From positions 15,217,974 through 15,281,973 of the forward strand of contig OZ316899.1 in the NCBI GenBank assembly GCA_973895155.1: a DNA stretch of 64,000 nucleotides. Direction: 5' to 3'. This DNA comes from Marsupella aquatica. Taxonomy: Eukaryota > Plantae > Marchantiophyta. Below, in pieces: positions 5,557-62,400 of this stretch. The notes below the pieces were generated by a model. The model saw only the letters and a list, made by a program, of their open reading frames with translations. It did not search any database and had not been told where the DNA came from. A program made the translations under genes and the position numbers. Positions within the stretch are counted from its first letter, which is position 1. Every line of letters begins with the position of its first letter.

Positions 5557-5584
5557 GGACCAACATCGTGTCAATGGGATCACG

Positions 5585-9890: not shown

Positions 9891-9908
9891 GAGATCCAGG
9901 AAGCGATC

Positions 9909-12178: not shown

Positions 12179-12211
12179 GCTGCGGACTATGAGAGCGGGC
12201 GACCACTGATC

Positions 12212-17224: not shown

Positions 17225-20200
17225 GAACCAAGACCCTTTTCCATCAAGCGCAAATTGCTGATTTTGGATCTTAACAAAATACTTTGGGATTCAATTAAAT
17301 TCCAAAGCAAGGGCAAATCCAAAAACGTTGTGACCCCAAGTGGAGTGCATTGGGATAGAAAAAATGGAATTAGTCGCATGTATACAGAAGGCCAGGGCTT
17401 CATGAGTTTCTAAAGTTGGTTTTTGACCAATTTAATGTTGCAATTTGGACATGTGTTGGGATACAACGAACAGTGAAAATGTTGACCATGATGTTTGTGG
17501 ATTGACTCAATATAGGTATATCTAAGAAACTTGTCATTTTTTTACTTTTTGAACAAGGAATAGTAAGAAAGACGTTTGAGTGTTAGCAGAGTATTCAGGG
17601 TTTGCAACCCTAAGTAACTAGGGAAAGCTAGTAGGAAATAATGTTAGGGAGAATACATGATCATGTTTCAAGAAAGTGTCAAGGGATAACTAAGGTCTTT
17701 ATGGTAGGGTAGCAAATGTTCCGTCTTTAGTTAGAATAGGCGACTAAATTGGGCCGGAAAATGACCCGACACTTGAAGTCTTAGATTTGGTTAAAGATTT
17801 TTCCCATAGGTGCTAGGAGGGTCCTTAGAGCACCCTTGTGAAGTATGACATCAAGTGAGGTCTCAACCTAGGGTTTCATTGTATTTTGGTGGGACTTAAA
17901 TTAACAAAATAGCGGGTCCCAGGAAAAATAGTTAATGGGGAAATGTAGGGGTTTCAAGTTGGAAAATGGGTTAAATATGGTCCACTCTATCCCTAGAAAC
18001 TTGTGGGAGAACTTGGTTAACTTTAATTACTTTTGGGGAACATCTCAAAGTTGAGAAGAATTTTGGAAAACATAAGAATTAACCCTCTTTACTAAATTTT
18101 AAAAAATCATTTATAAGGTTTTGTTTAGATATTAGTAAACCAGGACATAGTCCTATGTCTATAGAATCTGTGGATTTACTCATAAGTACTTTTGGACTCA
18201 TGGGTGATTTTTGGGGCAATCCAAAACGGTCTGGAAATACTGTTTTTTCCAACAACAAAAATCCGAATTTTTTTCCAAGTGTTAACCGCGTCGGCGGCGA
18301 CCACGACTTAAGCATGAGGCTGGGGGAGACTCAAGCACGAGGTCAGGAACACCATAAGGGTCAATACATGAGATGTTTGCTTTGAATTGGGATCAAGAGG
18401 CAACTACTAAATTGAATTGAGTTGCTATAGCTTTAGGCATGGGATGCTGATCAGGCTTGGTTGGCTACCTCGATGTTGTTGATTGGAATTGAGCTGCTTG
18501 CTATGGAGAAATAGGCTGCTGTTGGTCAAGAGATGGTTGATTGGTTGTGAGCTATGGTGGGCTACGAAATTGAATGGATGGCTGCTGGAGAATAGAGCTA
18601 GGCTACTAGCAAATTGATTGAATGTTGTAGCAAATCAGGAGGACCAGCTGGTTGTGAGCTATGGTGGGCTACGAAATTGATGGGCTATGGCTGCTGCAAA
18701 ATTCTAGCTGCAAAATTGACCAAAAGAGCTCAGAATTGAGCTGTTGGCTGCAAGCTATGGAGGACGTACTATGGCAAGTTGCTGACCAACAACACGAGAT
18801 CCATGGTGCTCCTTCATTCATGCTGCTACTTCATCCATGATCCTACTGTGAGAATAATCGGGCCACCTCCTTAGTAAACTCTGCCCTGAGTGATAAAAAA
18901 CATGGTCCTTATGAGAGTCGTGGCCCCTGGTGACACCTGGAATCTCCATAAGGGGCGTATAAAAAGTAAGTGTAATCAGGTCACCGCTTACACCCACTTT
19001 ACACCAAAAACAGGCATTGGGAGAATGGGCATAACTTTGGCTAGGGATATCCGTTGGGGCCCAAATGTTTTTGTGCTAAGTTAGGGGAAGGTAAGGCACC
19101 CCTTGGTGAAGGTGGAAACCCAGAAAAAGAATCACTCAAATATATTTTTAGCCAAGGCTAGGAGGGGGTCCCGATAGCTTGCAAACCAGAGCCGACCTAA
19201 GCAAACAAACACCAGATTTCAAGACTGACCTTTCTCGCACCCATACCACTTTAGTTAGGCTCTAGGGAAGGGTGTTTACCTTTGGTCAAGGGTGTAAGGC
19301 CATAAAGTTAAGAGAAGTAAGTATAGGGGGTAGTTTACTTAGGGTAGTAAAAGGGTTACAAGTAAAATAAGGCCAACTTTGACTAGGCATAACTTGAGAC
19401 TCACTCACTCTTTTTTGCAAGCTTTCAAGTGGGTTGGAAAGCTGGTGAGGAGAACCATAAGTGGGAGTAGGTTTGGAGGTCAAAGCATGCAACTCATGTG
19501 TGGCATATTCTAGGGCTTGGAAGGAGGCAAAATAACAAGTAGTAGGGTGGGCTATGAACTAATATAGAGTTGAACTTTGTGTGTTAGGAGGATTTGGGGG
19601 AGGTATGGTTGGACCCCAGGTCAAGCTTGGTGTGGTGTGGAAGGAGAATAGTATAAAAAGAGGAAATTTTCCTTTGTTAGGGACCGGGAGTCTCTTCTCT
19701 TAAGTGGAATCTCTACCTTGCCAAGGTAGGGCTAAGCTTGAGAAGGGAGAGGTGATCCATGCTTAGTGTGGAGAATGTATAGTGAACTTTTGTTGTAAAT
19801 ATGATGCAATAAAAGGAGACTTGTCAATCTTCATTGTGACCATTAAGTGTGAGTGCATTTGAAGTGTATGAGAGCAAGATAAGAGTCCTTGCTAGGGTGT
19901 AATCTTGGTCTAAGCTTGAAGGGGATGTGCTAGTACAAAACCAAGGCCAATGAGGCAAGGTTAAGGTGGAGCACTACTTTGAGACTTAGAGAAGATTGTA
20001 GCTTGTAGGTGGAAAGTACTTTGCTTGGTGTGTGGTGTTAACAAGAAGTAAGAACAAGAGGAAGAGTCCTTAGATAGAGGAGCCTTCTCTGGAGCTCAAA
20101 GAGGATGTGTGGACCCAAACCAAGGCCAGGGGGGCAAGGTTGAGGGGTAACACTACTTTGAGGGTCTTGAGGAGACTTAAGCTTGAAGAGGAAAGTACTT

Positions 20201-21181
20201 TGGGTTCTTGGGTGTTTGTGTGAGAATCTACTCTAAGGTGACAGCTTGGAGCGGAGATCCCCCTTGCTGATCCTTGGAGTTGAGGAGAGGGGAAGGGTGT
20301 GAGTGCAAAAGTAGTCAAGGGGACTACCTCTCTAGAAGTGGAGAGTCGAAAAAGTATGGAGTGATTAGACATTGCAAGCATATTTCAAAAGTTTTGTCAA
20401 TCCTTTATGACCCTGGTATGATATGGAGCAAGTATTAGGTAGTTTTTTTGGGAGAAAAGCCACTTAAGCTCCTTGACAAGTGCTTGACAATGTTCACTGC
20501 TGAGGAGCGGTTGAAACTTAAGTTTTTATTCACACAGGTGGAAGCCTTTGACATAGGCATTCAAAGATGTGACATTACAAATGGAAATGCAAATGTGCTA
20601 CTGAAGGATTTTTGGGTGGTATGGAGTGGATTTGGAAATCTATATGATTAAACCAACACCCTCCTTGTGGATGACTCCCACTTAAGGCGTTTGTCAACCC
20701 AAGCATGACCGGACTATCTCTAGTGCCCTATACGCATGCCAATTGTGAAGAGAATTTTCTTCTAGCAATTCTTTGGCCTTGTCTTGAGAAAGTATCACAT
20801 GCAAGTGACATTCAATGTTATCTTCTTATCAACTCTCCAATGTGGTCTCTATTGCACATAAAGAGAGACAAGATAAAAAATAAAATTACTTATGATCAAC
20901 TTAGTAAGAGATGTGCAACAAAAAATTGGAAGTCACAGTTTACGCATAGTATGTTGGACCTCAATAGCAATGAGATTCCTTGGAACATGAAGCACCGTAT
21001 ATGTAGCTTACGTCCTGAGGCAGAACTTGACAATGCACTTGTCACCTCACTTGCTAAAGCATTTGTAGGACGGGACTATTCAAGCCCATTTAGAGAAAAT
21101 CCCATACACTTTTTGCGGGAGATTATAGCCATGAGGAACAACACCTCCAAGTTTGAGCTCCCCGAAGATAAAGGGACTTGA
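17225..21181 (+). pseudogene. FCP1/NIF-like (HAD-fold) phosphatase-domain pseudogene split by a solo LTR
   Basis: KLLILDLNKIL, (frameshift) RRPGLHEFLKLVFDQFNVAIWT, then across the LTR MFTAEERLKLKFLF...LLKDFWVVW...NTLLVDDS. Removing the LTR and one TSD copy restores the frame. Confidence 0.75.
17496..20489 (+). mobile_element. Solo LTR (~3.0 kb), copy A
   Basis: TGTGG...TGACA termini; ATGTT TSD (17491-17495, 20490-20494); homologous along its length to the reverse complement of 53792-56907. Confidence 0.92.
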
Positions 21182-43219: not shown

Positions 43220-46033
43220 AGAGGCCCAACCACACATGTACAACGACAGAGAGAAAAGCCTACATTGGTGAAAGGTACTTCAACTGGAACATTGCCAAAG
43301 AGGAGGAGCTCTAGACTATCACAAGTTACCAAGGTGAACATGGCAGAGTCTGGTGATGATGGCTATGCCAATGCTGGGTATGACACTGAGGATTCTGACA
43401 TTGGAGGGTCAGAACCTTAGAGTGAACAACAGGTAATGCTTGAACTTCATCATCCTAAACCCTAAATCCTTGTCCTTGTTTCAAAGTATTTGTTAAGATG
43501 CCTACGTTGTCCATGATGTAGGTACAGAAACAAAATCGTGGCCCTAAGAAGACTGGGCCTGGTGGAGGTGGGCTGGTGAGATGTTGGAAAGACCCAAACA
43601 CTGGACTGTTATATGAAAGTGAGTGGATTGTACTGATATACCTTTTCAGTGTGTTTGGAAGTTGATATTCTATATTTTCCTAAAATTCAATGAAGTGCTT
43701 GGTGGTGTGTGTTTGTTTAGTGGTTCCATCAGCATCTGAAGGCAGATCAGGTCAATCTGACGTACTACATTCCAGAGGATCTTCAGGTAATACAAATCTG
43801 CTCGTCATGCATATGCAAGTGCATTTGCTCAACTTTTCAATGTACATATTTTGTGATTGAAAGCATGTGTGTGCATTGCAGGCGGGGCCTCGAAGATGCG
43901 CAGGGAACAAAGGCATGTTAAGAAGATGTTTGATAATGCTGCCAAAGTACAAAGGAATCAGGGAGATTTTCCCAAACACATTAAAGTGAGTTTTGTATTT
44001 TTTTTGAATGTAGATTTAGACATAGATCCTCTCCGTTATTGTGTGTATAAAACCTGGACTATGCATAAATTCCAGAGTTATGAATTGACATTCCATGTGA
44101 AATGCAGATTTATGACAATGATATTGATGATTCTGATCCCAACAAAGAGTACTGGTTGGAGGAACTTTGTGGCAATGTACTCAGAATCTTTGATGTATCA
44201 AAGCCAAAATGGACTGATCATCCACGAGTTCATATAACCAGTGTGTGGAAGAACATGGCAACTGAGTGGAAGTATGTGGGTGGGGAATTTATTGACAACA
44301 AATTCCAGAGTCATTGTCGTGGCATATTGAAGAGAGAGTGCCATAAAATGCATGTTTACTGGAAGAAAGTTTGCAATGAGGATCCAACCAAACTTGGGCC
44401 ATCTGGTGTTGATCCAAAGAAATGGGCAGCTTTGGTATCTCATTTCACCAGTCCAACATTGATATCTTTGAGTAAACAAATGACTGATAAAAGAGCACGA
44501 GTGCAAGATACCAGTCACTTTGGTAGAGGAGGGCATGATGCAGCAACAAAGAGAATGGTAAACTGTCTATATCATTTTCACTATCAATTCTGTCTTGTTT
44601 GTGAATCTTGATGAAAACAGACTCTGAGTTTCTCATTCATTGTGTGTTTGAACAAAAGCAGAAGAGAGGATCAAGCCCAGGTATATCTGACCTGAAAGAA
44701 AACCTTGGTAGTCAGGGTTCATTGCCAAAGGTGACAATGAGCCCATCATTGGCAAGTGCAGAAGGTCAGACTGGTAGTTTTTTGGGAGCAAAGGTGAGCC
44801 CGTCATTGGCAAGTGGGGAGGGTAAAAGTGCTAGCTTACTAGGGCAAGGATACAGACATGGATTAGCTGTGAGTATTGTCATTCCAATCTGATTTGTACA
44901 TCATTTTCCATTTGATAGAGTGTTGTGTCGTTTGTTAGTTTGACAGTGAGAATGTTGTGTTGGTTTGTGGTTCATTTACAGACCCCACATTCAAAAGAAG
45001 AGATCACTGCCATTGGGGCTGTCAAATTGGATGTCGATGAGTTGAAAGGCACTGTGAAGGAGTTGACAAACATGATGACTATATGGATGGCACATCACTC
45101 CAGTAATGCACAAGTTCCAACATTTGTTCCTAGTCACAGTAAGTACGTTGACTACAGCTACCAAAGAAGGTAGTAGAAAACGATCTCTTACTTTTTCAGG
45201 TAATAATGGAGGTAAAATTCTCTATCATCTATTCACTGTCCATTCAATGTAATTATTGTGGTGTATATATGTCATTGTATGTTTATAATGTTCTTGCATG
45301 TTCTAGTGTGATTATATGTTGTTGGTGTATACATGTTTGTTTATGCATTTATCTTGTGTGTATTTTATGACAGCATCTTTAGGGGAGCCTCCTATGTCGT
45401 AGGGAAATCCAACTGACACAGCTAATAGTATTCTGAAGCAAAATGAATTGGAAGTGAACCTATTGCCATCTGAGTTGCCCAAAGATGCCATTTCAGATGC
45501 CTTTCAGTTGCCAAAGGATAAGTCAATTGAGTTGACACCAGATAAAACCCCAGAATCATCTGAGTTGCCAAAAGATACTCCTGCTCTAAGTGAACAGGAT
45601 GACACTCCATCAACTAGAAGGGGAAAGTTCAAGAAAAGGAAGAAAGGATCTTCAGCAAATGCATCACGTGCACAGAAGAAACTCATTCAGTCTCCTAACC
45701 CCATTGCAAAGGTAAAAGTGTTGTTAGATTCGAGTGTTAGATTTGAGTGTTCACAAAATGTGTTATTCACAGTTTGCAAGAGGAGATTTGGTGAAGATGA
45801 AGAGTGTTGTGGACAATTCCATGATAGTGGCAGAAGGCAAGGTGACAAGGCTGCCAGGAGAAGATAAGTTCCATTGTGCAGATTTTGAAAGCCCTTTCTT
45901 GCGAGTGCGTGTGATTGATGTGTTTGTAGATGTGGCATTGCCATTTGCTAATGCAGGGGAGAACCAGTCTAAGTTATCTCATGTGAAGGGGATGAATGCC
46001 CTGTGGAACTCTAGATTGCTCAAGAAGCAGTAG
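43220..46033 (+). pseudogene. TnpA-like multi-exon second gene of the outer CACTA
   Basis: PSGVDPKKWAALVSHF...SHFGRGG block and VAEGKV...FH...LPF...ALWNS block, both paralogous to the inner element's ORF2. Confidence 0.7.
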
Positions 46034-46189
46034 AAGCAACCATGGGCCAAGAAGCGATAGACATGATAGAAGTAGGTTTTGTACAATGAGAATGACAACT
46101 CTGTTTTTCTACAGACATTAAGAGTTGTTGGTATTTCAGATTGTAGCACTTGACAATATATCTAATAATAATATGTGTATGCTTTTTTC

Positions 46190-47168
46190 AATGTCATTTT
46201 GCTTGTCATTGAAATGACATTGAAAAAAACTTAATCACACTTGCATTTGATTATTTGCTTGCATTTGCATTGAGTTGAATAACTATTGCAGGATTGAAGA
46301 ATGTGTCATGTCAATTGGATTTGTAAAGTATAGAATGTCTCTTTAGGGTTTCATTCTGCAAATGTATTGAATAACTTTGTAGTGTATGACTCTTAAAATG
46401 ACATGGATTTCTGTCTAATAAGACCACCCTAAGTCATTGAATACATTACCTGAATGACATATAAATTGACTGATCTAATGGTCATTATGAACATTTACAT
46501 TTGTGTCCAATATGACTCGACTCAAGTCATTAAATACATAACTTTAATGACCCCAAAAATGACATCTAAAATGACAGATCTCATGGTCATTATGGACATA
46601 TATAATTGTGTCCAAAATGACTACTTTGAAGTCATTCAAGACATGTCATTAATGACTAATGTGTATTTTACATGTCATCTTCCAATTGAATCACGTGTTC
46701 CAATATCACTAGACTACAATGTAGTCATTTTGGACGAGTCTTAAATGACGCAACCATATTGCCACGTGATGAATACCCTTTGAGCCACATGTCATTACTT
46801 GATTTGTTACGTATTGTACGTCATTTTGGACAAGTCCTAAATGACGGATGATCTTCCTTCCTTAATTGCCATGTGGGAATTATATAATTTTGTACGTAGA
46901 CCATCGACGGTGAACGACAATTTATCATCAACGGTGGTTTTTGGTCATTTCGGACCGTTCATCATTTATGACCAAATTGTAAATTTAGTCATTTCAGACT
47001 ATACAAAATGACCACACCTTTTTTGCGTCATTTGTCCAAAAGGACTGTGACCCATATGTCCGTTGTGATGCGTCTGGAAAGACCTACACAAATGCGTCAT
47101 TATTTTGTTAAAAAGACCATTTGTATAGTCATTTTTGTGGTCATAAACAACCTTGTTTTCCACTAGTG
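46190..47168. repeat. Subterminal repeat array and right TIR of the outer CACTA
   Basis: Many GTCATT/AATGAC motifs in both orientations, ending in CCTTGTTTTCCACTAGTG. Confidence 0.8.
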
Positions 47169-47700
47169 AATCAACACCTCAATTGGTGCTTCAGATTGAC
47201 TAAGTACACGATCCAAAAATATGGCAGCAACTCCTCCACTAGCTTTATCTGGCAACGTCACTAGCTCAATCCAATTGGAGAAATGCTCCACCATAACCAA
47301 AACATAACAATTATGCCGTTGGATGAGAGGCAATGGACCAGCAAAGTCCAAACTCCATTTGTACCCCAAACCCATGATTGACAATGGATGCAACTGGGGA
47401 GTGGGAGCATTAAATGATGCCCTCACTTGATCACATACCACACACTTAGCTATCAATTGTTGGACATGAGTGTGCATATCACGCCACCAATATTGTGTCT
47501 GCAGCAAGTTGTAAGTGTGCTTCACACCAAAGTCACCCAACTCCTTGTGCGTATGCCACACCAAATGTACTTGTTGTGATGGTTTTCGTATCACCAATAC
47601 CTTACCATCACGTAATACTCTCAAAATATGGTTTCCTTCCCATCAAAACCTGTCATGCTCCTTGGCATCAACACTACCACCAATAGAACCAGTGTGCAGG
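47169..47700 (-). pseudogene. pol: Integrase, 3'-truncated
   Basis: HKELGDFG...YWW...CVVCDQ, KWSLDFAGPLP, VMVEHFSNW. Confidence 0.9.
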
Positions 47701-47929
47701 TATTCCAACACTCTCTCATTGTTGTGAATATCCAATTGTCCAACCACAACCTCACCAGCATCCATATCGGTAGACTCATCATCTACTTCATTCAATAAAG
47801 TAGAGTCCACAGATCCACTGCATGCTAGAACCCAAGAAATGAAGGTAGATGCATGCCATCCTGGCACCGTCTCCTTATCCGATTCATCATACCATTTGGC
47901 TCCAGTCTCATTCTCTTGACTGGTACATG

Positions 47930-49311
47930 GATTGCGACTCAATTCATCTGCGTCCAAGTTCACTTTTCTAGGCCTATGCACCACCTGGAAATCATACTTC
48001 TATAACAACAATGCCCTTTGTGCAAGCTTCCTTGTAAGCTTGTCAGACTCCATTAACCACTTGAGAGGTTGATGATCAATGATCAAGGTGAAGGGGTTGC
48101 CAAACAAGTAGCAACGGAAGTGTGCTGCAACCCACACTGCTGCCAAACACTCAGATCCCTCATAAGAGCTATACTTAGCCTCTATTGAATTGTTTGATCT
48201 ACTAGCATAAGCCACAACAAACTCATTCCCCTCATCATCCTTTTGAGTCAGCACTGCTCCAAGTTCTACTCCACTCCAATCAGTGTGTAGCTAAAATGGT
48301 CTCCCTGAAATGGGTCTTCTCAAAATAGGGGACAATGCCAATCTTTCTTTCAACTCCTGAAAGGCATGCTCCTGGTTATCACCCCAAATCCACTCCTGAT
48401 CCAACTTAGTGAGTATGGTTAAAGGTTTAGCAAGTTGGCTAAATCCTTTAATGTACCTCCTGTAGTAGCTCGCCAATCCAAAGAATGCACAAACTCTACT
48501 CACATTAGTAGGATGAGGAATCTATGTAATGGCCTCCACCTTATTCTGTTGCACACCCAATCCCCCTGGGTAGATAGTGTGGCCCAAATACTCAATCTGG
48601 TCTTGGAAGAACTTACACTTGCCAGGATGGAGTTTCAACCCATGTTCTCTCAATCTCTCCAACACAATCTGCAAGTGCTGTCGATGTTCTTCCATAGTGG
48701 AAGAATAGACCAAGATATCATCAATGTAACATCTGACAAAATCTAAACCTGCAAGAATTTGATCCATGACTCTCTGGAATTCAACTAGTGCATTCTTCAA
48801 CCCAAATGGTAAGAACAACCACATCAACAAACGATCCTTGCCATGCAAATCAATTTCCCATAATGTTGTTTTGGACCTATCAAAATGTCTGATTGAAAGC
48901 TTATGGTACCTTGCCATAAGATCCAATGAACTAAAAACCTTTGCATGGCACTGCATCAAAGATCTCCTCAGGTGTGGGCATGGCATATCGATCAGATTTT
49001 GTCTGACAATTAATAGGTTAGTAATCACCACACATGCGCCTATCTATGTAATTGCCATGCACATCCTTCTTGGCTGGCATCATTGTGGCAGATGCATGCT
49101 CTCCGTATGAGATCTCCACCAAACCAACCTCCAGCAAATCTTGAGTTCTGCTCCAAATCAAAGCTCTCTCCATGTCACTGTAACGGTATAGTCTATGAAA
49201 GATGGACGCATCACTAGCCAATTCAATCTGAATACCAGGGCCCTTCAATGTCCCCAAATCCTTCATGCTAAATGCAAAACAATTCCAGTAACTCTTTAGG
49301 AATTGATGCAT
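47930..49311 (-). pseudogene. pol: Reverse transcriptase and RNase H
   Basis: RMCGDY, FSSLDL, LPFGLKNA, CYIDDILVYS, IEYLGH (RT); VVAYASRS, ECLAAVW, DHQPLKWL, LDADELSR (RH). Confidence 0.93.
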
Positions 49312-51661
49312 CACAACTACATTTTTGCATGTTGGGACCAGGTTTAACCTAACCCAAAACAACGTTCCTTCGATTAACGTCCGACAACGGTCCGGAGATT
49401 AACGACATTATCTGATCCCGTTGGATCTTCGAATGACATCCGACAACCGTCCGGAGATTAACGATGTCATTTAGAGATCCAACGGGATCAGATAATGTCT
49501 CTTTGCGTGATGTTAAATTTACCTCCTTTAAGACACGGTAATTAACCTCGCATCATACAATGTACCTCATATTACGTCTTACTAGATGTGGTAACTTAAC
49601 TGGCCCCAAACAACGTAACTAAGAACATAGTATAGGACAACATTCTTAAGTTTGGCATTTGGAACAACGTATGTGAAGATACATTGTCATAGCATACCAT
49701 ACGTTTATCGGGAAAAATGACGTTAAGTCCACATATCAGTGGGGGACAGACTGAACTATAGGCAGGAGGCTCACTATAGCCAGCATTCCCGAGTGAAGAC
49801 ATCCAAGGTCCTCAGTGTAGAGAAGTTGAACCGTGGGAGGCAAAGTGTTTAGCTATGGTGTGGAAGTTCTTTGCAAATGTGCATTGTCATTTCCTCCTGC
49901 TTGGTGAGGAGGAGAAGATGGTTTGAGGGTTCTTTTGCCGTGGAGGGCTTGTTGACAAGCTATGTACCTCATAGACCAATTTCTTGATTGCAAATACGTG
50001 GAAACAGGTTGTGGAGCACACTTTAGTGACTATGTTGGCTTTATGGAGCATTTTTCTGAAACCGTGCATTTCATCTCTACTCGATGGGTAGAGTGCTCCA
50101 TTCTTGCCAACAAGCACTTGGACCCAGGAGAGTTCTTGTTGCATCCAAGCAGTGATTGTGGTCCAGAAGATTCGCTCGAGGATGATGATGGTGAGGCCTA
50201 CCCTCCCACCTTGTCTAAATGTGAGCTAGCTGTCACCCACTGAACTTCATATTGCTATGTTTGATTACAAGGAAAGTTGTGCAACCGAGGTGGAGGCTCA
50301 GAGGCTATAGGCTGGTGAAGCTGTTGTCCAAAAGAATTGGAATGCCAGCCAAAGGCGGGCTTTGTACAACAAGAGGAAAGCGGACGAGGAGTACTACTAG
50401 TCTGGAGAAGGGACTCCTTAATCAACATCAGTCTGGAGGGAGGTTGTAGAGGGTTGACCATGACTCATGTAGGCTACATTTGCAGTAGAAAGGATGGTAG
50501 AGCTATTGTGTATCTCTATTTGGTCTATGTGCAACAATAAACACATCCATGAATGTATTTGTTGCAACAATTGTGTGGGTTTGAATGTTGTATCTTTTTT
50601 GTATGATTAACATCAAAGCAAATTTGTTACGTTGATTGAAACATTGTATCTAAATTACTAACGTACGTCGTTCTACTCGTGGTATCAACTTTGTCGCGCC
50701 ATACATCATTGAGTACGTCATTTTACTGGGTTACAAAGTATAGAACAACGTTAAATGGAGTTATAACATTGGCTAATGGTTCAGTACACGACTTTGCAAC
50801 GTGTTACATTGAATAGTGCCAAAACCTATAAGCAAGGCTCCACCCTTGGCTGCACCGGAACCAGATAGCAGTAGCAATGCCTCAGAGCAAGATGCCTAGC
50901 AGTATCAATTGTGTCGGCGGCGAGGCGGAGGAACGAGACGTGACAGGCCCCATTCTCAACGACATTAGGTTGTAGGTATTTCAGTAGTAGGAGTTCCTCC
51001 ATGCATTCTATACATATTTTTTGCCATTTTGATTCAGGCCACCCAATTGTGGTGGCACCTCATTCTGGGTTACAATATGGAAAATAACCTACATATACGT
51101 GTATTCTATGTGTGTACTGAACCCTAACAAGGACCCCACCCAGACAGTGCAATGTGTAATAGGACGTATGTACTCACGTATACGTCCTCCTTTATAAGAC
51201 CTTTAACCATCCCAATACATCGTTGAGCCCTACGTAGGCCAATGTACATTGTACCACAAGAGCACCATACATCGTCCCCTACTACGTCAAATTACCCATA
51301 CATCTCAAAAGGGGTCATATTTTATCGGCTACGGACGATGCTAAAATAATACAACGTTTAGTGCATGGCACATTATGACGTACTAGACGTGGTTAATTGT
51401 CCATTACATACTCTTACACGACGTTTGTGGGTAAAGTTTTACACTAGCATTGGGTATATTTTACGTAGTATGACACGTTGTAAAACCTGATACCTACATG
51501 GTTAAGAACAATGTCTTGGACGTGGTAAAGAGCGTCTTCCCAAACGTGGTAATTAATGTTGCTCTATTAACGTCCTGAATGAGGTCTTTCCTCCGCGGTG
51601 CATATACGTCGCGATTAACGTCTTCTCAAAGTCCGTTAATCAGCTATAAAATGTAGTTGTG
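49312..51661. mobile_element. Non-autonomous CACTA/CMC-type DNA transposon with CACAA termini
   Basis: 14-bp perfect TIR CACAACTACATTTT (49312-49325, 51648-51661); CAT TSD; ACGT/ACGA-rich subterminal regions; removal restores ERHR-MHQFLKSY in frame. Confidence 0.92.
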
Positions 51662-51964
51662 CATGCGATGTCTCTCCTCCCCTATCAACTTAGGACCAAT
51701 CTGTGGCTCCCAACTCTCCACCAAATCCCTAATATCTTTTTGTAGGGTAGAAGAGATAGCCAATGATTGTTATTTAGCAATATTTTGAGTAGTCCCTTCC
51801 TGCTCAAAAATCTGTCCAGTCTTGGCCAATCTTGCCATAGGTCCATGAACTATCTATGTGCCCCCAGTTGTGGCCATTATTGTCTCAGTAGGCCGCAAGC
51901 TCACCAATGGACGATCTGTAACACCAAGAGAGTGCATCCAGAAGTGCTTATCTACTCCCAAGCT

Positions 51965-52910
51965 GACAATCCAAGTTAAACAATTCAAATCCATGACTTG
52001 GCCAAGGACCTAGCAGCGTGAACTCTCTGACACAGATGCAATAGCAGTAGTACATGCGGAGAATCCCATGGCCCGCTCTCTCTCATCAGTAGTGGGTTCT
52101 ACTAATTGTTGTAGAGCTGTATCTCACACAAGTCCAGTACCACATGCGTTGAAAGCATATGAAGCACAATGGCTCACAAAAGTGGGTAATGCACAACGTG
52201 GGCACACAACCATATGGACTATGGCCAATGGAGATTTGTCAGGCTGGGTCACACCCTGTGAACAATGCCTTGGATCCAAAATATCATCCACTACCAAGGC
52301 TGGCAAGCGAGGAATGTTGTCAAATGCTCGCTTCAACACTTCACCTGGTAACAAATTAGTCCACCACAAACATGGACAATGTGCACGAGAACCCACACGT
52401 GCAACATCCAATAACACAGCCAATCCAAGACCTCACCTGATGAACACTAGCAACAATCCACTAACAATGATCACCCAAGAGTGGCATGTTCTCCAAAATG
52501 TAGGCTGAAGGCTGTGGCTAATGCAATTGGAGATGACGCAACACCCATAACATCTCCCAAAACAATGTAGATGGTGGATCATGAAGTCCATGTCCAACTC
52601 CAACTTTGGCCTTGACATGGCCAACTAGCACTCACCAAATTAATAGGGCCAACGCGATCCAAATGATCCACCCCTAGCAATAAAATATCAGCAGGTAGTG
52701 CATGTTGATAGCCACAAACAACATCCAATGGCAATAACTGTGGATAACTATCCACCAACATAGTCACATGGTGCAATGAGACTCTTAGTGCTATCTCATC
52801 TGTCTCCACATACAAGTAATAACGCCCTGGAATTCTTGCGTGAAGAACAATAGCCAATCTAGTGCTAATCCCACCAAATAAATCCAACAAACAAATACCC
52901 TCCGGTGGAT
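51965..52910 (-). pseudogene. DNA (cytosine-5) methyltransferase domain, DNMT3-like, inside Gypsy pol
   Basis: Motif I LLDLFGGIS; II YVETD; III LPADI; IV LVSASWPCQGQS; V GLHDPPSTLF; VI YILENMP; VIII LDVARVGSRAHCPCLWWTNL; IX ERERAMGF; X VLGQVMD. Two frameshifts and several stops. Confidence 0.9.
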
Positions 52911-52971
52911 ACTACCATGCAATGGGAGTGGTATCCAATGGTGAAAGAGTCACCGGCCCACCTGCAGGAGA

Positions 52972-53791
52972 CTACTCTGCTCCTAGCTGTGGTGTAAAAG
53001 TATGACGCCATGCATCATGCAACAATTGTGCTGCTGTCTGTGGCAAGGCTTGGTTAGTGCTCCACACTAGTGGCACAACACTACCAACAGGTAACCCATG
53101 CATGACTTGCTCCTCATGTGACTCCTCCACTGCTGTAACATCTGCTGCATGTGCGTTACCGTCCATCAAATCATCAAGATTTGTGATCACATCATTGAAT
53201 GCTGCCAAAGACAATGGTGTAGATTTAGGGCCTCCCATAGGTCCACTAAATTGCACTGGCAATCTGCTCAATCTAGCATCTCCTGATTGCCAATCAAGTC
53301 GATATGAAACTGATTCATCCCAAAAATCAAGAATAAATCCCATGGCGTACAGTACTATACATCCCACCAACACATCATAGGACTTTGCCTTAGTCAAAAT
53401 AGCTCGCGCTTGTATGTGAGAGCTATCCTTCGCATGACCCTCCTAAATCCGCAAGTCAAGTGGTTGTCTAGTGATGTGTTGTGCGGGTGTAGGTCCCCCC
53501 AATGAAGTCTGAATAGGAAAGGGACACTTCTCCAAATCATTTGGATGCAATCCCAATCCTTGTACTGCAGACTTACCCAACATCAAGGGTTGAGCACCAG
53601 TATCCAATAACACTATCTTTGGCTTGTATACTACTCCAGTAGGCCCAACTAATTGGAAGATACCACTCTGATTATCCAATGACACAACGCTAGGTTTAAA
53701 CCTAGTCCTCTCAAATGCAAGGCTTGCTGGCAAATCCATCAACTTTGCCGCTACTGCATGCCATGTCTCACTAGTAGCAGTAGGTGGTGTC
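52972..53791 (-). pseudogene. pol: Aspartic protease and linker of the DNMT-Gypsy element
   Basis: VLLDTGAQPLMLG ... SYDVLVG; same reading frame as DNMT motifs I-IV. Confidence 0.88.
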
Positions 53792-56700
53792 TGTCAAACA
53801 CTTGTCAAGGAGCTTAAGCGGCTTTTCTCCCCAAAAGACTACCTAATACCTGCTCCATATCATACCAGGGTCACAAAGGATTGACAAAACTTCTGAAACG
53901 TGCCTACAATGTCTAATCACTCCCTACATAAGTAGTTTCAACTCTCCACTTCTAGAGAGGTAGTCCCCTTGACTACTTTTGTACTCACACCCTTCCCCTC
54001 TCCTCTACTCCAAAGATCAGCAAGGGGGATCTCCGCTCCAAGCTGTCACCTTAGAGTAGATTCTCACACAAACACCCAAGAACCAAAGTACTTTTCTCTT
54101 CAAGCTTAAGTCTCCTCAAGACCCTCAAAGTAGTGTTACCCCTCAACCTTGCCCCCTGGCCTTGGTTTGGGTCCACACATCCCCCTTTGAGCTCTAGAGA
54201 AGGCTCCTCTATCTAAGGATTCTTCCTCTTGTTCTTACTTCTTGTTAACACCACACACCAAGCAAAATATTTTCCACCCTCAAGCTATAATCATTTCTAA
54301 GTCTCAAAGTAGTGCTCTACCTTAACCTTGCCTCCTTGGCCTTGGTTTTGTACTAGCACATCCCCTTCAAGCTTAGACCAAGATTATATCATAGCATGGA
54401 CTCTTCTCTTGCTCTCATATACTTCAAATGCACTCACACTTAATGGTCACAATGAAGATTGGCAAGTCTTCTTTTATTGCATCACCTTTACAACAAAATT
54501 TCACTACACATTCTCCACACTAAGCATGGACCACCTCTCCCTTCTCAAGCTTAGCCCTACCTTGGCAAGGTAGAGATTCCACTTAAGAGATGAGACTCCC
54601 AATCCCTAACAAATGAAAACTTACTCCTTATATACTATTCTCCTTCCAAACCACACCAAGCTTGACCTGGGGTCCAACTACTCCTCCCCCAAGTCCTCCT
54701 AACACACAAAGTCTAACTCTATAGTTCGTAGCCCACCCTACAACCCATTGTTTGGACTCCTTCTAAGCCCTGGAATATGCCACACATGAGTTGCATGCTT
54801 TGACCTCCAAACCTGCTCCCACTTATGGTCCTCCTCACCAGCTTCCCAATCCACTTGAAATCTCGCAAAAAGAGTGAGTGAGTCTCAAGTTGTGCCTAGT
54901 CAAAGATGGTCTTATTTTACTAACTACCCTAAGTAAACTACCCCCTATACTTTTCTTAACATGATGGCCTTACACCTTTGAACAAAGGTAATTACCCTTC
55001 CCTAGAGCCTAACTAAAGTAGTATGGGTGCAAGAAAGGTCAGCCCCTAAATCTGGTAGTCATTCCCCTATGCCGACTTTGGTTTGCAAGCTGTCGGGACC
55101 CCCTCATGGCCTCGGCTAAAAATGTATTTGAGTGACTCTTCTTCTGGGTTTCCACCTTCACCAAGGGGTGCCTTACCTTCCCCTAACTCAGCACACAAAA
55201 AATTGGGCCCCAACGGATACCCCTAGCCAAAGTTATGCCCATTCTCCCAAGGTCTGTTTTTGGTGTAAAGCGGGTGTAAGCGGCGACCCGATTACACTTA
55301 CTTTACACGCCCCTTATGGAGATTCCAGGTGTCACCAGGGGAGAGTACTCTCATTATGCTCACGTTTCTTATGAAGAATTTGATAAGGACATCAATTTTC
55401 GCAGCCATTTTCCTCTCTCTTGAATTCAATCTGAAAGTGCATCATTCTCTATTGGATTCGAATGGCAGCAGGTCAATCTACAGCTCAACCAGGTTTGCAG
55501 CATCCTTCTCAGTCCACCTCCATAGCCATCCAGTCTTGCAAGTGATTCAAAATTGCAGTAGAATTTTGCAGCAGCCATAGCCCACCAATTCGCAGCTAGC
55601 CCTCTTAATTCCTTCCTTGCAGCTGGTCCGTTTGCTACTACATTCAATCAATTTACTAGCAGCCTAGCTCTATTCTCCAGCAGCCGGCCATAGCTCACCC
55701 TTCTCAACTTTGTAGCTAGCAGAGCAGCAACACTATTGAGCTAGCAACATACTTACTAATCAGCCAACACTCAACATCTCGTGCTTGAAGCTAGCCCTTC
55801 TAATTCTGGTGTAGTAGTAAGTCTGATCAGCTGCCAGCCATTCAATTTCATAGCCCACCATAGCTCACAGCCAGCCAACTAGCTCTTGATCACTAGCAGC
55901 CTATTTCTCCATAGCAAGCAACTCTATTCCAATCAACAGCATCGAGGCAGCCAGCCAATTCTGATCAGCATCCCATGCCTGAAGCTATAGCAGCTCAATT
56001 CAATTTCGTAGCTGCCTCTTGATCCCAATTTGAAGCAAGCATCTCATGTATTGACCCTTATGGTGTTCCTGACCTCGTGCTTGAGTCGCCCCGGCCTCGT
56101 GCTTAAGTCATGGTCGCCGCCGACGCAGTTGACACTTAGAAAAATTTTGGATTTCTTTGTTGGGAAAATTGTATTTCCAGGCCGTTTTGGACCACCCCCA
56201 AAACTCACACATGAATCCAAAATGACTTCTGAGTATATATACATATTTTATGGACATAGGACTATGTCCTGGTTTACTAATATCTAAACAAAACCTTATC
56301 ACCGATTTTCTAAAATTAGGTAAATAGGGTCAATTATTATGTTTTCCAAAATTCTTTTCACCTTTGAGATGCTCCCAAAAAGTAACCAAAGATACCCAGC
56401 TTCTACCACAAGTTTCCAGGGATAGAGTGGACCATATTTAACCCACTTCCAAACTTGGAACTCCTAAATTTACTCATCAGCTATTTTTCCCGGGACCCGC
56501 TATTTTGTTCATTTAAGTCACACCAAAATACAAGGAAACCCTAGGTTGAGACCCCACTTGACATCTAACTTTTTAGGGGTGCTCCAGGGACCTCCTAGCA
56601 TCTATGGGGAAAATCTGAACCAAAAGTAAGACTTCAAGTGTCGGGTTGTTTCTCCGACTCGGAATAGTCGCCTATTCTAAATAAGGACGGAACGTTGTAT

Positions 56701-56907
56701 GCCCCATCATAAAGACCTTTCTTATCCCTTGTCACTTGCTTACAACTCATTAACCTTCCATTCCACTATCTTTCCTATTCTACCTACTTAATTTCCTAAA
56801 ACCTAGTTACTCTGATAGCACTTAAAACGTCTTTCTTACTATTCCTTGTTCCAAAAGCAAAAAAAATGACAAGTTTCTTACATAAACCTATATCGAGCCA
56901 TTCCACA
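53792..56907 (-). mobile_element. Solo LTR (~3.1 kb), copy B, same family as 17496-20489
   Basis: Reverse-complement homolog of copy A; GTGTC TSD (53787-53791, 56908-56912); removal restores RATKLT-PPTATSETW in frame. Confidence 0.93.
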
Positions 56908-58850
56908 GTGTCAACTTTGTTGCTCTAGAACTACATGCTGCCTCTCCATGAGAAGCCAAAATTGGGGTATCCTTGCATAATATGGTTGCCAATCTGAACA
57001 CATCAGCTGGACCAACCCCCAATGTTAGCATATCCGTCACTGAAAATAATGGGGTGCGCACTATGGTGGTAGCCATCCCCAACAAGGTACCTGTCATCCC
57101 TACTGCAACATCTTGTGATTTTTCCAACTTACCCAGGCTAGGGTTTGTCCAAATGGGGTCATAGAGGCAGTCTAAATTGTCTTTGACAATGTAAAAGACT
57201 AAGGAAGCTTTGTCTGACAACATGCATCCCCCTCTATGGATCTAGCTCCACTATTGCTCCTCAGGGCTCAAGAACTTTGGCTGCCCCACATGTCAAAGCT
57301 ATTGATGCATCAATATGCGCAGTGCCACACATGAATCCCATATATGGTGGCAAGGTCTCCATCAGCCCCATAGGATGTGGAAGCTCTACGAGATGTAGAA
57401 GCCCGATCACCAAAAGCAGGTCTCACCTGAGAACTAGCCATAGCAGCTAGTGGTTGCTCTAATTAAGCAATCTCAGCGTCCTTAGGATCTGTAATCACAA
57501 TAGGAGCAACACCACCTCCCTATCTTCTTGCATGTGCCATACCTTGTCCATGACCACCGCCTCTACCTCCTCTTCCCTGATCATGTGTGCATTGTCCTCC
57601 TCTCCGTAACTCAAGATGGAGTGAGAAACACCTATCCTTGGTGTGTCCACAAGCTCCACAATGATCACATTGCCGCTGATCAGGTGTTGAGGCCCCTCCT
57701 GGCCCTCTATGATCAGGGCAATATCCCTATGCATGGTCCCCACCACAGGTCCAACATCCTGATTGTTGTCTAGCATAAGAAGGCACAGGTCTCCGACTGG
57801 TAGATTCTCGTGCAATGGGCTTGTTCCTCTGGCTCTTGCGTGCAATAGGCTGTGATGTAGGTGTAGATGCAGCCTTTGGTGCTTCCTTGGCAAATCCAAA
57901 AGTCACCACTTTCTCATTCACCATATTGAGCTCAATGTGCTCAGAAAGTGTAAAAACAATTGCCAATGTGGAATCTCCATCCCTAAAAAGAGTGACATCT
58001 CTCACTCTTTGTTGCAATTCTCTGTCCAGAATTGCATACCAAAACTGGACTGCCTGGGTCTCTATCACTTCCTTGGTGATAGTGATCAATCTGTGCATAC
58101 AAGTGTATGCCCCACGTAGACTCTCTCCAATCTTGCGCTGAAACTCCTTAAGACCCTTCAACTTATTAGTTCTCACACACTAATAGTTTTGCTTCAATAC
58201 CTCAAAAAACTCCACCACAGGATTAAATGCTGGCACAGCTCCAGTCCCTCCCACAATCACATTGGTATGAGTAGTGATGGATGCTATTGGAGTGGTACTA
58301 GTGGATGGTGTGCCACTCTGGCTAGTGCTGCTAGAAAAAGCAGCAGCCATGGCAAAGGGTTGGGCAACCGCACTAATGCCATAGGTGATGGACACATAAT
58401 TAGGCAATCAATGTTGCCTCCATGTCTCAATCTCAACCAAATGAGCCTTCCAAAACTCATGGTAATCATCCATGTGTGGCTCCTCCAAAGCTTGAAATAA
58501 ACCCTTCCATGCATGAAAGGGGTAAACAACGTGGCATTACGCAATGTTTGCATATTGCACCACGTATCAAACTCCTCGATGAAGTCATTCAGATCAATCG
58601 TGCCAACTGCACCAGAGTATTGTCGTGGGCTCGTTGTAGCCCCGTACAGCTCTTCCATATCCCACAACAAAGGTGCAATCACCTGATGATGAGGAGAACT
58701 GGTCATAGAGTCCTTGTCGAAATCATTGTCTAAAGCTGTGCTATTGACTGCTACCAATGTCACTGGCCAAAATTGCACCTCACTCCGAGTGAAACCAGTC
58801 CGCCGTCCATCGGTTAGCCCCGCAGCACCAGAAGAATTTGTGATGACCAA
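56908..58850 (-). pseudogene. gag: gag and gag-PR linker of the DNMT-Gypsy element
   Basis: YSGAVGTIDLNDFIEEFDTWC and FQRKIGESLRGAY (capsid-like); two knuckles, CWTCGGDHA*GYC and CDHCGACGHTKDRC. Confidence 0.8.
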
Positions 58851-59069
58851 TCACTCAAATTGTAACCATGAATCTAATCTATGTGCTAACCCTAACGGGG
58901 AAATCTGTCCCTGCCAGTACCACAAGCACTCACCATGGTGTGTTGGGCATCACTCCAACATCTCCATGAGAGAAATTCATAGCACAACTAGAGTGTTCGG
59001 TTGCAAACCCGAATCACTCCTATGAAATCAAGCGCCCACACAACACTAACATGGCGCATAGGCAGGAAG

Positions 59070-59437
59070 CGTGTGTGGAGAGGGTCCAACAACAAGAGTG
59101 GATAAATAGCAACTCTCCACACCAAGAGTGATCACAACCCAATCACACAATGTTCATAATGCTCAATGTAGGGCCTTCATAATAGGCCTCAAGGATCCAA
59201 TGTCAAATACCCAAGAATCCGTCGCAAATGAGTTCAAACGGAGAATTATATAGATTTAGAAGTGCATATATAAAACCCCTAGGGACTCATTCCTTGGACA
59301 TCAAATGTGGAAGGAAGCATGTACAATGCACCACATAAGAACTAGCTAGTTAAACGCACGAGGGGAGGAATAGCTTTGGGATGGGTGATCTCTCACTTGT
59401 CATTATGCACAAAATCTGCCACTCCAAAATGACAACA
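59070..59437 (-). repeat. Candidate 5' LTR of the DNMT-Gypsy element
   Basis: Non-coding, upstream of gag, begins TGTTGTCA on the minus strand; no second copy or clear PBS available to confirm. Confidence 0.35.
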
Positions 59438-62400
59438 CTTGCAATTCTCCTCATGTACCAGCAGCTTGCTGGCCCGCCCGCTCTTGCTTCGCCCTCACGC
59501 CCCTCGTCCCGAGTAACCACAAGACGTCAAGAAACACTTTGCTACGCCGGGACTTAGTTTTGGGTTGACAACATTTGGCCGGCTGCCCTCCCTATTTCCT
59601 TTGCAAAATATAGGGTGTTGTTGGTGCGCAATTCGAGCTTCCGTTGTTGACCCTACTACGTATTCGGCAACACTCGTGCCTGTTTCTTCATAGAAATGCG
59701 AGTTCAATTTGTTCTCATATAGCCGGCAATCGACGCTCCCAAAATGTGTCACACGATTCAGTGTGCTGTCATAGCCGATTCAACAACATTTGCGTCTACT
59801 TCCTTCACAAAAATGGTAGATTTGCGTACGACAACTATACAGGCGTTTCTGCCCCAAAAATGACTTCTTTCAAAATCAATTTCCTTCACATAATAGCCAG
59901 CCGACGCATCCCGTACTTATCCGGCTCAATGAACGCAGATCAAACATTTACCCTCCATAGAATACTATCGCACCCGATCTGGTTGCAGCCAATCGATACA
60001 ACTCAAACACATCAATCGGCAAGCAAGGAACACAAACAATCTGCACAGACTGTCGACAAATCCGATACCACACTTCACTTCAGTGTGATCCGAATCTGAT
60101 TAGAGCCGCATATAGACTACAGATCTGTCAAACCTCCAACTCCAGATCCGCTCAAGGATCAAACTCACATGGTCTTAACTTGGATCCACATACCAGCAAT
60201 CCAACCAAGCACTACGATGCGCAATCCGAGATACCACAAACCGTTGCCAAACACAATCAAACTGAAAATTGAAGCTCTGTCCAAGCAGTGTTCAAGCTCA
60301 GATCTTTTGATGTAATCTCAAAAGAATTGAATCACAATTGATGCCAACAATACGCACTCAATCCCGTCCAATCCGATCACACATATGTCAAGCCAATGCA
60401 CCTTGCACTCAAGGGATTCACGTTACATAGAAGGACTCCAACAACCATAGCCACAACATGAGCTCCTCTCCAAGGCTCAACATTGAAAGATAACCTTTCA
60501 ATGCCTCACAAGAGAGAACTACCCTCTCACACAAACCTAACAAAACCTTATTGGCTCATATAGCACACATGCTAAACATACGGATCTAGATAGTACGATA
60601 CACTCTAACACTACCTAGAATGGGGTGACATCTCCCCGCTCATTGATTGGCTTGACTGTTCACGATTGAAGCTTGGTCCTTATTCCTTTGGTCCAAATTT
60701 GAGCATGCCAAAGATTTGATTCTGGGCAGTTATACAGACCCAAGAGTGATAGCCATAATGCCCTCCTAATCATGTGGTACATTAGGTGCCCCATTAGGTG
60801 CCGTGCCGCCAGCCCGAGTGGGAACTTTTAACTTCTCCTATGCCTAGAATAATCATCACAACTAAGTAACCTACTATCATTGTGCTACTAATTGTACTTC
60901 TATGTCTATGTAAGGCATACTTTATATGTATTATGCCGTATCACGGGTTACCCGCCGTGCTGGTAGCGTCATAGTGGGTCTATTTAAGCAAATTTTCTCT
61001 GAATCTAGAGAGGGAGAACCTTGTCAAACAACCAATTTTGATTGTTGGGGGAGTCGGGAGTCTAATTCCATTACAAACTAGGGACTAGTCGTTTGAAAAT
61101 AGTACTTAGTCGTTTGAAAGTTGCATCCAAGCAATATCCATTGCAAACAGAACTACAAAAGTTTGAGTGGATGCATGTGTTCTAGGTTTTGTGTGGAGTG
61201 GAGAACCTATGTCTGTTAAGGTTCCTCCTCCCATTTTCATTCAACTAAATCCACTACCTAGTTGAAAGCCAAAGCATATTAGTGAGTTTATGGACACACC
61301 TTGGAGTTTACAAGTTTTGGAAATTGGTTTTGGTTGGCGATGCCTCCATTCTTGGGAATTCACTCCATAAAAATGGTACATCACGTGCGATGAAGGATAG
61401 GCACATTTTATTAATTTGAAGGGAGACTTAAGAATTTTTGTAGAAGAACAATAGGGTCTTTTAAATTCAATTTTGAGACTTATGAGAACATTAGGGTCTT
61501 TCTAACCAAAATTTTGGAATATTCCAACTTTATAGGGTTGACAAATTTTATTTTCTTACATTTTAGGGGTTTGAGGCCTAAAAACATCGCAGGGATGGGG
61601 AGGCATCCATATAGTGAGACCTCCGAGTCTCCATTCCAACAAAATCATAATTAATATTTGGAAGATTGTGTTGCTTGGGGCTTGTGAAACATATTATTTT
61701 GGGGAATGGTGAGACGAGAATGATTACCAAGGGTGCGTGAAGTAACCTTCTGAATAGTATCTTCCTAACAGGGCATGAAAAATTGTTTGACACACGGGCT
61801 AGAGATCTCGCTAGTCTTACTAATGGAACTGCAGGATGTGTTTCAGGCAAAAGATGTAGTGTACTAAACCCATCTGGAAGTGGGACCTTTAAAGGACCAA
61901 GACTATATCAGACTAGTTTCACACCAAACCCAAACATTCATATCTTCTATTGAGTATTCATGGCATATAAGGCTAGCGATCTCGCTAGTATTAACGGTGG
62001 TAGTATGTAAAGAAAATAATAGAGCCGCATCAATCACCCAACCTTTATTATCTATAAGGTGAGAGTCAACATGGCCGGAACAAGGTCCTTACGGGGAGAA
62101 CCTCAGTAAGCCAAGGGTATCCAATGTGACCTACAAAACCCAAAAAGGACAAAACAAACAATTGAAGAAAACTAGTCTTCTTCACATAGATGCTACCTTG
62201 TAAGCATCGGAGTTGTAATCAAACTCTGTGTTGTAATCGGAAGATGCAATGTGATCCTCTACCCAATAGATGTGGTTCTCTCTATCAATCCAATAGGCCT
62301 TCTCCTCTTTGAGTCTCTTGCGCTTGGAGGGGGCCGTGAGCTGATTCTTCTCGGTTTGGTCAGGAGCTTTGGCGGATTTATGAGATTCAAAAAGCACAGT

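Follow-up and report, generated by a model that had tools for sequence, protein, structure and literature searches.

A DNMT3-type methyltransferase domain between protease and reverse transcriptase in a probable relic Ty3/Gypsy retrotransposon of a liverwort

Why should a plant retrotransposon encode a cytosine methyltransferase? Cytosine methylation is the main route by which plants silence transposons, so a transposon that brings its own de novo methyltransferase is counter-intuitive. The question is raised by a 64,000-nucleotide stretch of the genome of the liverwort Marsupella aquatica (GenBank assembly GCA_973895155.1, contig OZ316899.1, positions 15,217,974 to 15,281,973 of the forward strand), called the window below and numbered from its first letter. 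From the letters of this stretch alone, an earlier note had described a Ty3/Gypsy retrotransposon that carries a DNMT3-like C5 cytosine methyltransferase (C5-MTase) within pol. According to the analysis reported here, the minus strand of the window from 47170 to 58850 is very probably an old, dead and insertion-split copy of a multi-copy Ty3/Gypsy family whose Pol polyprotein includes a DNMT3-type domain that was under purifying selection in the past.

Identity of the DNMT domain

The C5-MTase motif series that had been claimed for the minus strand was recovered in full: 9 of the 9 strings are present, in the order given for them, distributed over three reading frames (Table 1). The window copy keeps the canonical order I-IV-VI-VIII-IX-X together with the catalytic Cys and the ENV-type Glu, and the RxR of motif VIII is degraded to CxC. 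A family hidden Markov model (HMM) was made from six proteins, all from other organisms, and the window was searched with it as 2091 stop-free six-frame pieces. Only four of these matched; each lies on the minus strand, and together they are collinear with the model (E = 1.8e-33, 1.5e-3, 3.8e-19 and 8.4e-8, the last two within piece C at 52432-52127 and 52123-52013). Piece C was also matched by residues 263-423 of the related protein P0019 (tblastn, E = 6.8e-15). Another relative, P0021, which is positive for the Pfam DNA_methylase profile PF00145, aligned through its residues 13-476 to 53439-52061 in three frames (tblastn, E = 1e-51).

When the three stop-free pieces of the window were searched by themselves, no Pfam match was obtained at E ≤ 1, PF00145 included; the profile check proposed in the earlier note thus came out negative for this copy. 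Similarly, phmmer with piece A against the PDB returned nothing relevant. These results count against the identification, as does the transitive nature of the predicted PF00145 membership, which reaches the window domain through its close relatives. The lack of a profile match is attributed to the first frameshift, which falls right after PCQG and cuts the motif IV-VI stretch that scores in relatives. The same negative searches are what speaks for a chance resemblance, in which the motifs would be accidents of decayed retrotransposon spacer and no methyltransferase domain would be present. We consider this hardly credible, because a model made from foreign proteins picked out, of all the pieces of the window, just the four collinear ones, with a best E value of 1.8e-33, because P0021 aligns over its residues 13-476 with E = 1e-51, and because the closest relative, P0012, passes PF00145.

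Searched against 1.84 billion representative proteins (phmmer), piece A retrieved 251 relatives at E ≤ 1e-3, of which 40 reach E ≤ 1e-10. Most of those that were scanned exceed the PF00145 gathering score (cut-off 22 bits), with a match that spans motif IV to VI. P0012, the best match to piece A (64% identical), scored 38.6 bits, and P0030, P0032 and P0021 scored 45.5, 41.5 and 32.4 bits, respectively.

The kind of C5-MTase was addressed with a profile of seven diverse family members, searched against all PDB sequences. DNMT3A/3B/3C ranked first (E ~ 1e-20, 75-77 bits), followed by DRM (4e-11 to 1e-8), M.HaeIII/M.HhaI (6e-8 to 1e-6) and DNMT2 (~1e-3); DNMT1 was absent from this search at E ≤ 0.01. 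P0019 alone gave the same ranking with weaker scores. In the ESM Atlas, P0019 falls among eukaryotic, mostly streptophyte, DNA_methylase clusters, and its model matches DNMT3A (TM 0.61). For a further relative, P0053, vertebrate DNMT3 was the sole match outside transposons. The DNMT3-like label of the earlier note is therefore upheld, and the profile ranking places the domain closer to DNMT3 than to DRM, DNMT1, DNMT2 or the bacterial enzymes.

Comparison with host enzymes (DNMT3A/3B, plant DNMT3, DRM2) points the same way, as the window family shares with them the catalytic fold of DNMT3 and a short target-recognition region. In the alignment its motif order, I to X as in DNMT3, is not rearranged in the manner of DRM. 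Invariant among the seven members are the motif I Gly, the catalytic Cys-Gln, the Glu and Val of ENV, both motif VIII Arg residues and the motif IX Glu residues, and motif X is weakly conserved (LGQVMD in the window copy). The differences from host DNMT3 concern the surroundings and motif IV. The companion readers of DNMT3 are PWWP/ADD in animals and DUF in plants, whereas no such reader adjoins the window domain in the same protein stretch, where its neighbours are protease and reverse transcriptase (RT). In motif IV the window family has PCQ, which it shares with DNMT1 and bacterial enzymes, whereas DNMT3 has PCN.

Place of the domain in the Gag-Pol polyprotein

The methyltransferase had been proposed to be part of the polyprotein and not a neighbouring gene. 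This is borne out by the frame it shares with the protease, by its occurrence at the same site in related loci, and by its presence inside uninterrupted open reading frames (ORFs). A single tblastn high-scoring segment pair (P0021 residues 13-284; 53439-52606, frame -2) runs from the protease C-terminus to PCQG, in agreement with the claim that motifs I-IV lie in the protease frame; as also claimed, the stops between protease and motif IV are all TAG (53445, 52974 and 52914). Towards the other end, the region was said to lead into RT once the CACAA insertion is removed. Indeed, the frame of the DNMT C-terminus (-1) and that of the RT N-terminus (-2) coincide when this insertion, which has terminal inverted repeats (TIRs; Table 1), is discounted, since 2350 + 3 bases equal 1 mod 3.

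Around the domain the Ty3/Gypsy order protease (PR)-RT-RNase H-integrase (IN) was found, with gag upstream and DNMT between PR and RT. When window positions 46000-60000 were compared with related loci (blastn), gag, protease, DNMT, RT and integrase were collinear, and DNMT likewise lies between protease and RT in L001/L002/L003 (one element in several metagenome samples), L005, L006 (a locus in the liverwort Calypogeia fissa, on a chromosome scaffold of 41.7 Mb) and L007. L007 is near-intact, with ORFs of 677 (gag), 503 (PR-DNMT, PF00145-positive), 543 (RT-RNase H) and 298 (integrase) residues. Residues 141-366 of its gag ORF matched 58224-57604, its RT ORF matched 49299-48955 and 48986-47865, and its integrase matched the window over residues 17-215 only (all tblastn). 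The gag stretch 58676-57892 is collinear with L001 and L005 (blastn), and the RT-RNase H region is 71% identical to L005 over 1467 bases (blastn). The distance from the DNMT end to the RT start in relatives is 357-382 bases. The window protease gave a weak Pfam Asp_protease_2 match (E = 0.0018, below the cut-off). Uninterrupted single ORFs from other sources join CCHC, protease and DNMT (P0118) or CCHC, DNMT and RT (P0142).

These findings bear on a one-off insertion, which the earlier note had named as the outcome that would speak against its reading: a host DNMT3 fragment or a separate mobile element would have landed once, as cargo of this locus only. The L005 locus could suggest such mobility of the segment, as an inverted duplication of 190 bases lies on either side of its DNMT segment. 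This duplication, however, repeats the PR-DNMT linker in inverted orientation and is therefore taken as a copy-specific rearrangement, and no repeats or duplications flank the DNMT segment in the window, L001 or L007. The position between PR and RT is, moreover, common to five loci from different sources, the domain occurs inside uninterrupted gag-PR-DNMT(-RT) ORFs elsewhere, and the segment shares the protease frame. One-time cargo is thus very unlikely, and the comparisons support a methyltransferase that is a built-in domain of the element family, with no single capture. The two arms of the L005 duplication lie at L005:1949-2138 and 3762-3950, and the duplication adds ~0.8 kb between DNMT and RT.

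Two later insertions interrupt the window copy, and the coordinates given for them in the earlier note proved exact at both, as judged from terminal repeats or ends and target duplications (Table 1). Both are missing from related loci, the ~2.3 kb that here separate DNMT from RT and the ~3.1 kb that separate gag from PR (blastn). The TIR insertion has a CpG observed/expected ratio of 0.77 and is on that account much younger than its host element. Its ends begin CACAAC, and it contains a 37-bp hairpin (49404-49499) and repeated CGATTAACG-like subterminal motifs. The 3-kb unit at 53792-56907 has an inverted second copy at 17496-20489 (83-90% identical), which is why it is probably a solo long terminal repeat (LTR) of another family, as 17496-20489 would be; no repeat pair was found inside it.

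Table 1. Features of the element and its insertions in the window, listed from the gag end; positions are given on the forward strand.
Feature	Position	Strand, frame	Evidence or remark
Gag-like region; CCHC zinc knuckle CWTCGGDH at 57733-57756	57604-58850	minus	tblastn and blastn
Insertion, 3116 bp, TG..CA ends	53792-56907		GTGTC duplication (53787-53791, 56908-56912); splits gag/PR
Aspartic protease (LLDTGA 53593-53610) and linker to DNMT	52972-53742	minus, frame -2	TAG stops 53445, 52974
DNMT piece A, motifs I-IV, 110 residues	52582-52911	minus, frame -2	family HMM, E 1.8e-33
DLFGGIS, motif I	52864-52884	minus, frame -2	
VETD, motif II region	52798-52809	minus, frame -2	
PADI	52684-52695	minus, frame -2	
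WPCQGQS, motif IV with catalytic Cys	52603-52623	minus, frame -2	
DNMT piece B, motifs V-VI	52419-52631	minus, frame -3	tblastn with P0021 residues 283-355; HMM E 1.5e-3 (52631-52521)
GLHDPPSTLF, motif V region	52560-52589	minus, frame -3	
LENMP, motif VI, ENV-type Glu kept	52482-52496	minus, frame -3	
DNMT piece C: motif VIII, short target-recognition stretch, IX, X	51965-52432	minus, frame -1	family HMM and tblastn
AHCPCLWWTNL, motif VIII	52352-52384	minus, frame -1	
ERERAMGF, motif IX	52061-52084	minus, frame -1	
LGQVMD, motif X	51989-52006	minus, frame -1	
DNMT-RT linker up to CAT target duplication	51662-51964	minus, frame -1	open translation
TIR element, 2350 bp, non-coding, CACTA-type hallmarks	49312-51661		perfect 14-bp ends CACAACTACATTTT, CAT duplication; splits linker from RT
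Reverse transcriptase, YIDD 48717-48728	48522-49311	minus	Pfam RVT_1, E 1.3e-27
RNase H part of RT-RNase H	47865-48503	minus	tblastn with L007 RT/RNase H residues 167-533, E 2.1e-105
Integrase, N-terminal two thirds: H2C2 finger and core start	47170-47744	minus	Integrase_H2C2 E 4.4e-11, rve E 1.3e-5

Decay of the window copy and past selection

The verdict of the earlier note that this copy is non-functional holds. Two frameshifts lie within the DNMT domain (near 52606-52622 and 52419-52432), and five in-frame stops were counted for it (TAG at 52520, 52463 and 52012, TGA at 52126 and, immediately ahead of the domain, TAG at 52914). Both motif VIII Arg residues are replaced by Cys in the alignment with vertebrate DNMT3, two insertions split the reading frame, and the integrase is truncated, its homology ending at ~47170. 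With the downstream part of L005 as query, no match to the integrase C-terminus, the PHD finger or the element's 3' end was found elsewhere in the window. One might suppose that frameshifting or read-through still lets this copy make a functional enzyme, and the exclusive use of TAG from PR to motif IV could be cited for it. The probability of this is next to nil: the two frameshifts fall in the catalytic core and are accompanied by further TGA and TAG stops, both motif VIII Arg residues are lost, pol is split by two transposon insertions and ends in a truncated integrase, and other copies have sense codons at the stop positions.

Those other copies were seen in public runs of two organisms, which contain hundreds to thousands of short contigs that are 90-99% like this stretch (948 in X1); the stretch is covered by short contigs only, none of which spans it. 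From this abundance at 90-99% identity the family is taken to be multi-copy. Six stops of the window copy (three in the protease/linker and three in the DNMT domain) are a sense codon in nearly all other copies, so these stops are private decay. Differences between the window copy and the others are biased 60:30 towards A/T in the window copy. Its CpG observed/expected ratio is 0.22-0.32, with a TpG+CpA excess of 1.5; the ratio of the whole window is 0.47, and that of L007, which is near-intact, 0.69-0.79. CpG depletion and A/T bias together form the pattern expected from deamination of methylated cytosines, as would befall a silenced copy.

Several searches for the outer parts of the element were negative and tell against the reading given above. 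No LTR pair was detected by seed-based repeats or by sensitive blastn between the flanks, no primer-binding site by a simple pattern search, and no target duplication of the host element; the ends of the host element are consequently undefined. The stretch was, further, found in no public RNA run. The terminal regions of L001 and L005 had no match in the window. These two loci themselves have short direct repeats (115-137 nt) near their ends (L001:4642-4778 and 12104-12240; L005:7688-7802 and 8143-8257) and no long LTRs. Just beyond the truncated end of the window element, at 46453-46656, lie two tandem units of ~105 bp that are 81% identical and rich in ATGAC/GTCAT motifs.

The earlier note had proposed dN/dS on the DNMT across copies. 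Between the window DNMT pieces and L001, L005 and L006 the ratio is 0.18-0.28 (Nei-Gojobori), and elsewhere in the element it is 0.08 for RT and 0.12 for integrase. These values are rough because dS is 1.1-1.8, near saturation, which weakens the argument drawn from them; they fit purifying selection, and they indicate that the DNMT domain was probably so constrained for most of the time separating the subfamilies.

Relatives, precedents and possible function

Domains related to the window DNMT occur in several layouts: PR-DNMT-RT; RT-RNaseH-DNMT-IN-PHD, some with Tudor; a Copia-type polyprotein; and DNMT with Dam. Piece A matched the layouts other than its own at E values of 1e-6 to 1e-10, with 34-41% identity for the proteins named as examples. 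The window's element is of the PR-DNMT-RT type, whereas in the other retroelement layouts the domain either follows RNase H and precedes integrase or is part of a Copia backbone. P0150 is the Copia-type polyprotein, with the order CCHC - DNMT - gag_pre-integrase - rve - SH3. P0115 combines DNMT with a Dam adenine methyltransferase domain in one protein and resembles the dual-methylation 'EpiLTR' elements (bioRxiv 10.64898/2026.05.21.726589). A PHD finger follows the integrase in L001:11550-11820, L005:7252-7521, P0093, P0100, P0097, P0123 and P0159, in some with Tudor, so that a DNA methyltransferase and a histone reader are combined in the family.

A quick maximum-likelihood tree of the DNMT domain was made with vertebrate DNMT3 as single outgroup and root, on rows picked by similarity to the window. 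Alignment and tree used the window read-through with X at every break, not a consensus or frame-corrected sequence. The window domain grouped with P0021/L007, P0030 and P0032 (SH-aLRT 94), and the RT-RNaseH-DNMT-IN type formed one clade (95) nested among PR-DNMT-RT types. Such placements from a quick tree should be taken as a lead only. Among the named relatives of the DNMT piece, the best comes from Calypogeia fissa. Two other Gypsy-type elements lie on the plus strand of the window (2684-6661 and 8350-14170; ORFs up to 652 residues) and have no DNMT domain. Their RT is 25-36% identical to that of the DNMT-bearing family, and the named relatives of one of their ORFs (12212-14167) are from Riccia sorocarpa and R. 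fluitans, plus one fern. Together with the Calypogeia match, these relatives point to a liverwort host, in line with the land-plant type of genome that the earlier note had seen.

We tentatively suggest, giving it somewhat less than an even chance, that DNMT3-bearing LTR retrotransposons form a large and old clade with uninterrupted members that reaches liverworts. Within this clade the module would have moved within Pol and been joined with PHD/Tudor readers into a self-marking toolkit, and PR-DNMT-RT may be an undescribed architecture.

A DNMT3 inside the Pol of a Gypsy-type element has been described before, in Klebsormidium nitens (KnitGypsy-Dnmt3; de Mendoza et al., 2018; PMC5890265). That survey, which included Physcomitrella, Selaginella and angiosperms, reported retrotransposon DNMTs of the plant lineage for Klebsormidium only, and later papers name 'streptophytes' for such elements only by citing the 2018 work. 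No report of DNMT-bearing retrotransposons from liverworts or other land plants was found by full-text literature searches, and among the five proteins that P0053 retrieved in a region-restricted search none was from Klebsormidium. Compared by description, KnitGypsy-Dnmt3 and the window family share a non-rearranged DNMT3-type domain inside the Pol of a streptophyte Gypsy element. Both are intronless, have a weakly conserved motif X and show purifying selection (Ka/Ks <0.2 there, PMC5890265; 0.18-0.28 here), and copies are silent and decayed in the host. They differ in that KnitGypsy-Dnmt3 is hosted by a charophyte alga and the window family by a liverwort, a land plant, and in that a DIRS-like repeat layout was reported for the former whereas no terminal repeats were found in the window copy. 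SymbioDIRS-Dnmt3 of Symbiodinium likewise has a DNMT3-type domain inside a retrotransposon Pol, but its backbone is of the DIRS kind, with a tyrosine recombinase, its host is a dinoflagellate, and it is regarded as an independent acquisition (PMC5890265). The suggestion of the earlier note that the window extends DNMT-carrying retrotransposons to another lineage is thus sustained: the kind of element is known, and the window family, with the Calypogeia fissa locus, is a new host lineage (liverwort) for it.

What the domain would do in an active member can be outlined from the predicted Gag-Pol order of the family, gag(CCHC) - protease - DNMT3-type C5-MTase - RT - RNase H - integrase, with a PHD finger in relatives. 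The DNMT domain would be translated as part of Pol and could then methylate the element's new cDNA or the DNA of the integration site de novo, as proposed in PMC5890265. A new copy would then carry host-like methylation from the start, and the integrase-linked PHD finger of relatives would add chromatin targeting. Self-methylation of their own cDNA by active members has, in our judgement, somewhat less than an even chance. It is weakened by the fact that none of the DNMT3 domains carried by Gypsy elements is known to be active; when the Klebsormidium domain was tried in yeast, methylation was not seen, a result that its authors call inconclusive (PMC5890265).

The yeast result can equally be read in favour of a domain that is real but has some other target or role in active members, such as host DNA (silencing or target-site chromatin), RNA, or DNA binding as a module only. 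Poor conservation of motif X in the family, noted also for K. nitens (PMC5890265 supplement), points in the same direction, and the PHD, Tudor or Dam modules joined to the domain in relatives would fit a broader chromatin toolkit. The catalytic Cys, ENV and RxR, on the other hand, are invariant among diverse members, which argues against a purely structural role, and the DIRS-borne DNMT3 domains do methylate CG de novo, SymbioDIRS-Dnmt3 being the only retrotransposon DNMT3 for which this has been shown (PMC5890265). On balance such another target or role is judged only slightly less probable than self-methylation, which is kept as the working proposal.

In the literature that could be searched, the plant lineage was until now represented by Klebsormidium alone, whose enzyme yielded no readout in yeast (PMC5890265). 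The same design is now seen as a multi-copy family in a liverwort genome and on a Calypogeia fissa chromosome, and its domain bears the mark of purifying selection in the past. Land plants are thereby added to the range of the phenomenon, and with them lineages in which genetic and methylome studies can be carried out. The window copy itself is a well-documented fossil that shows the fate of such an element: methylation, deamination and the entry of later insertions. If DNMT3-bearing retrotransposons are indeed a large and old clade, liverworts would be a tractable system for asking why a transposon carries the very enzyme that normally silences transposons.

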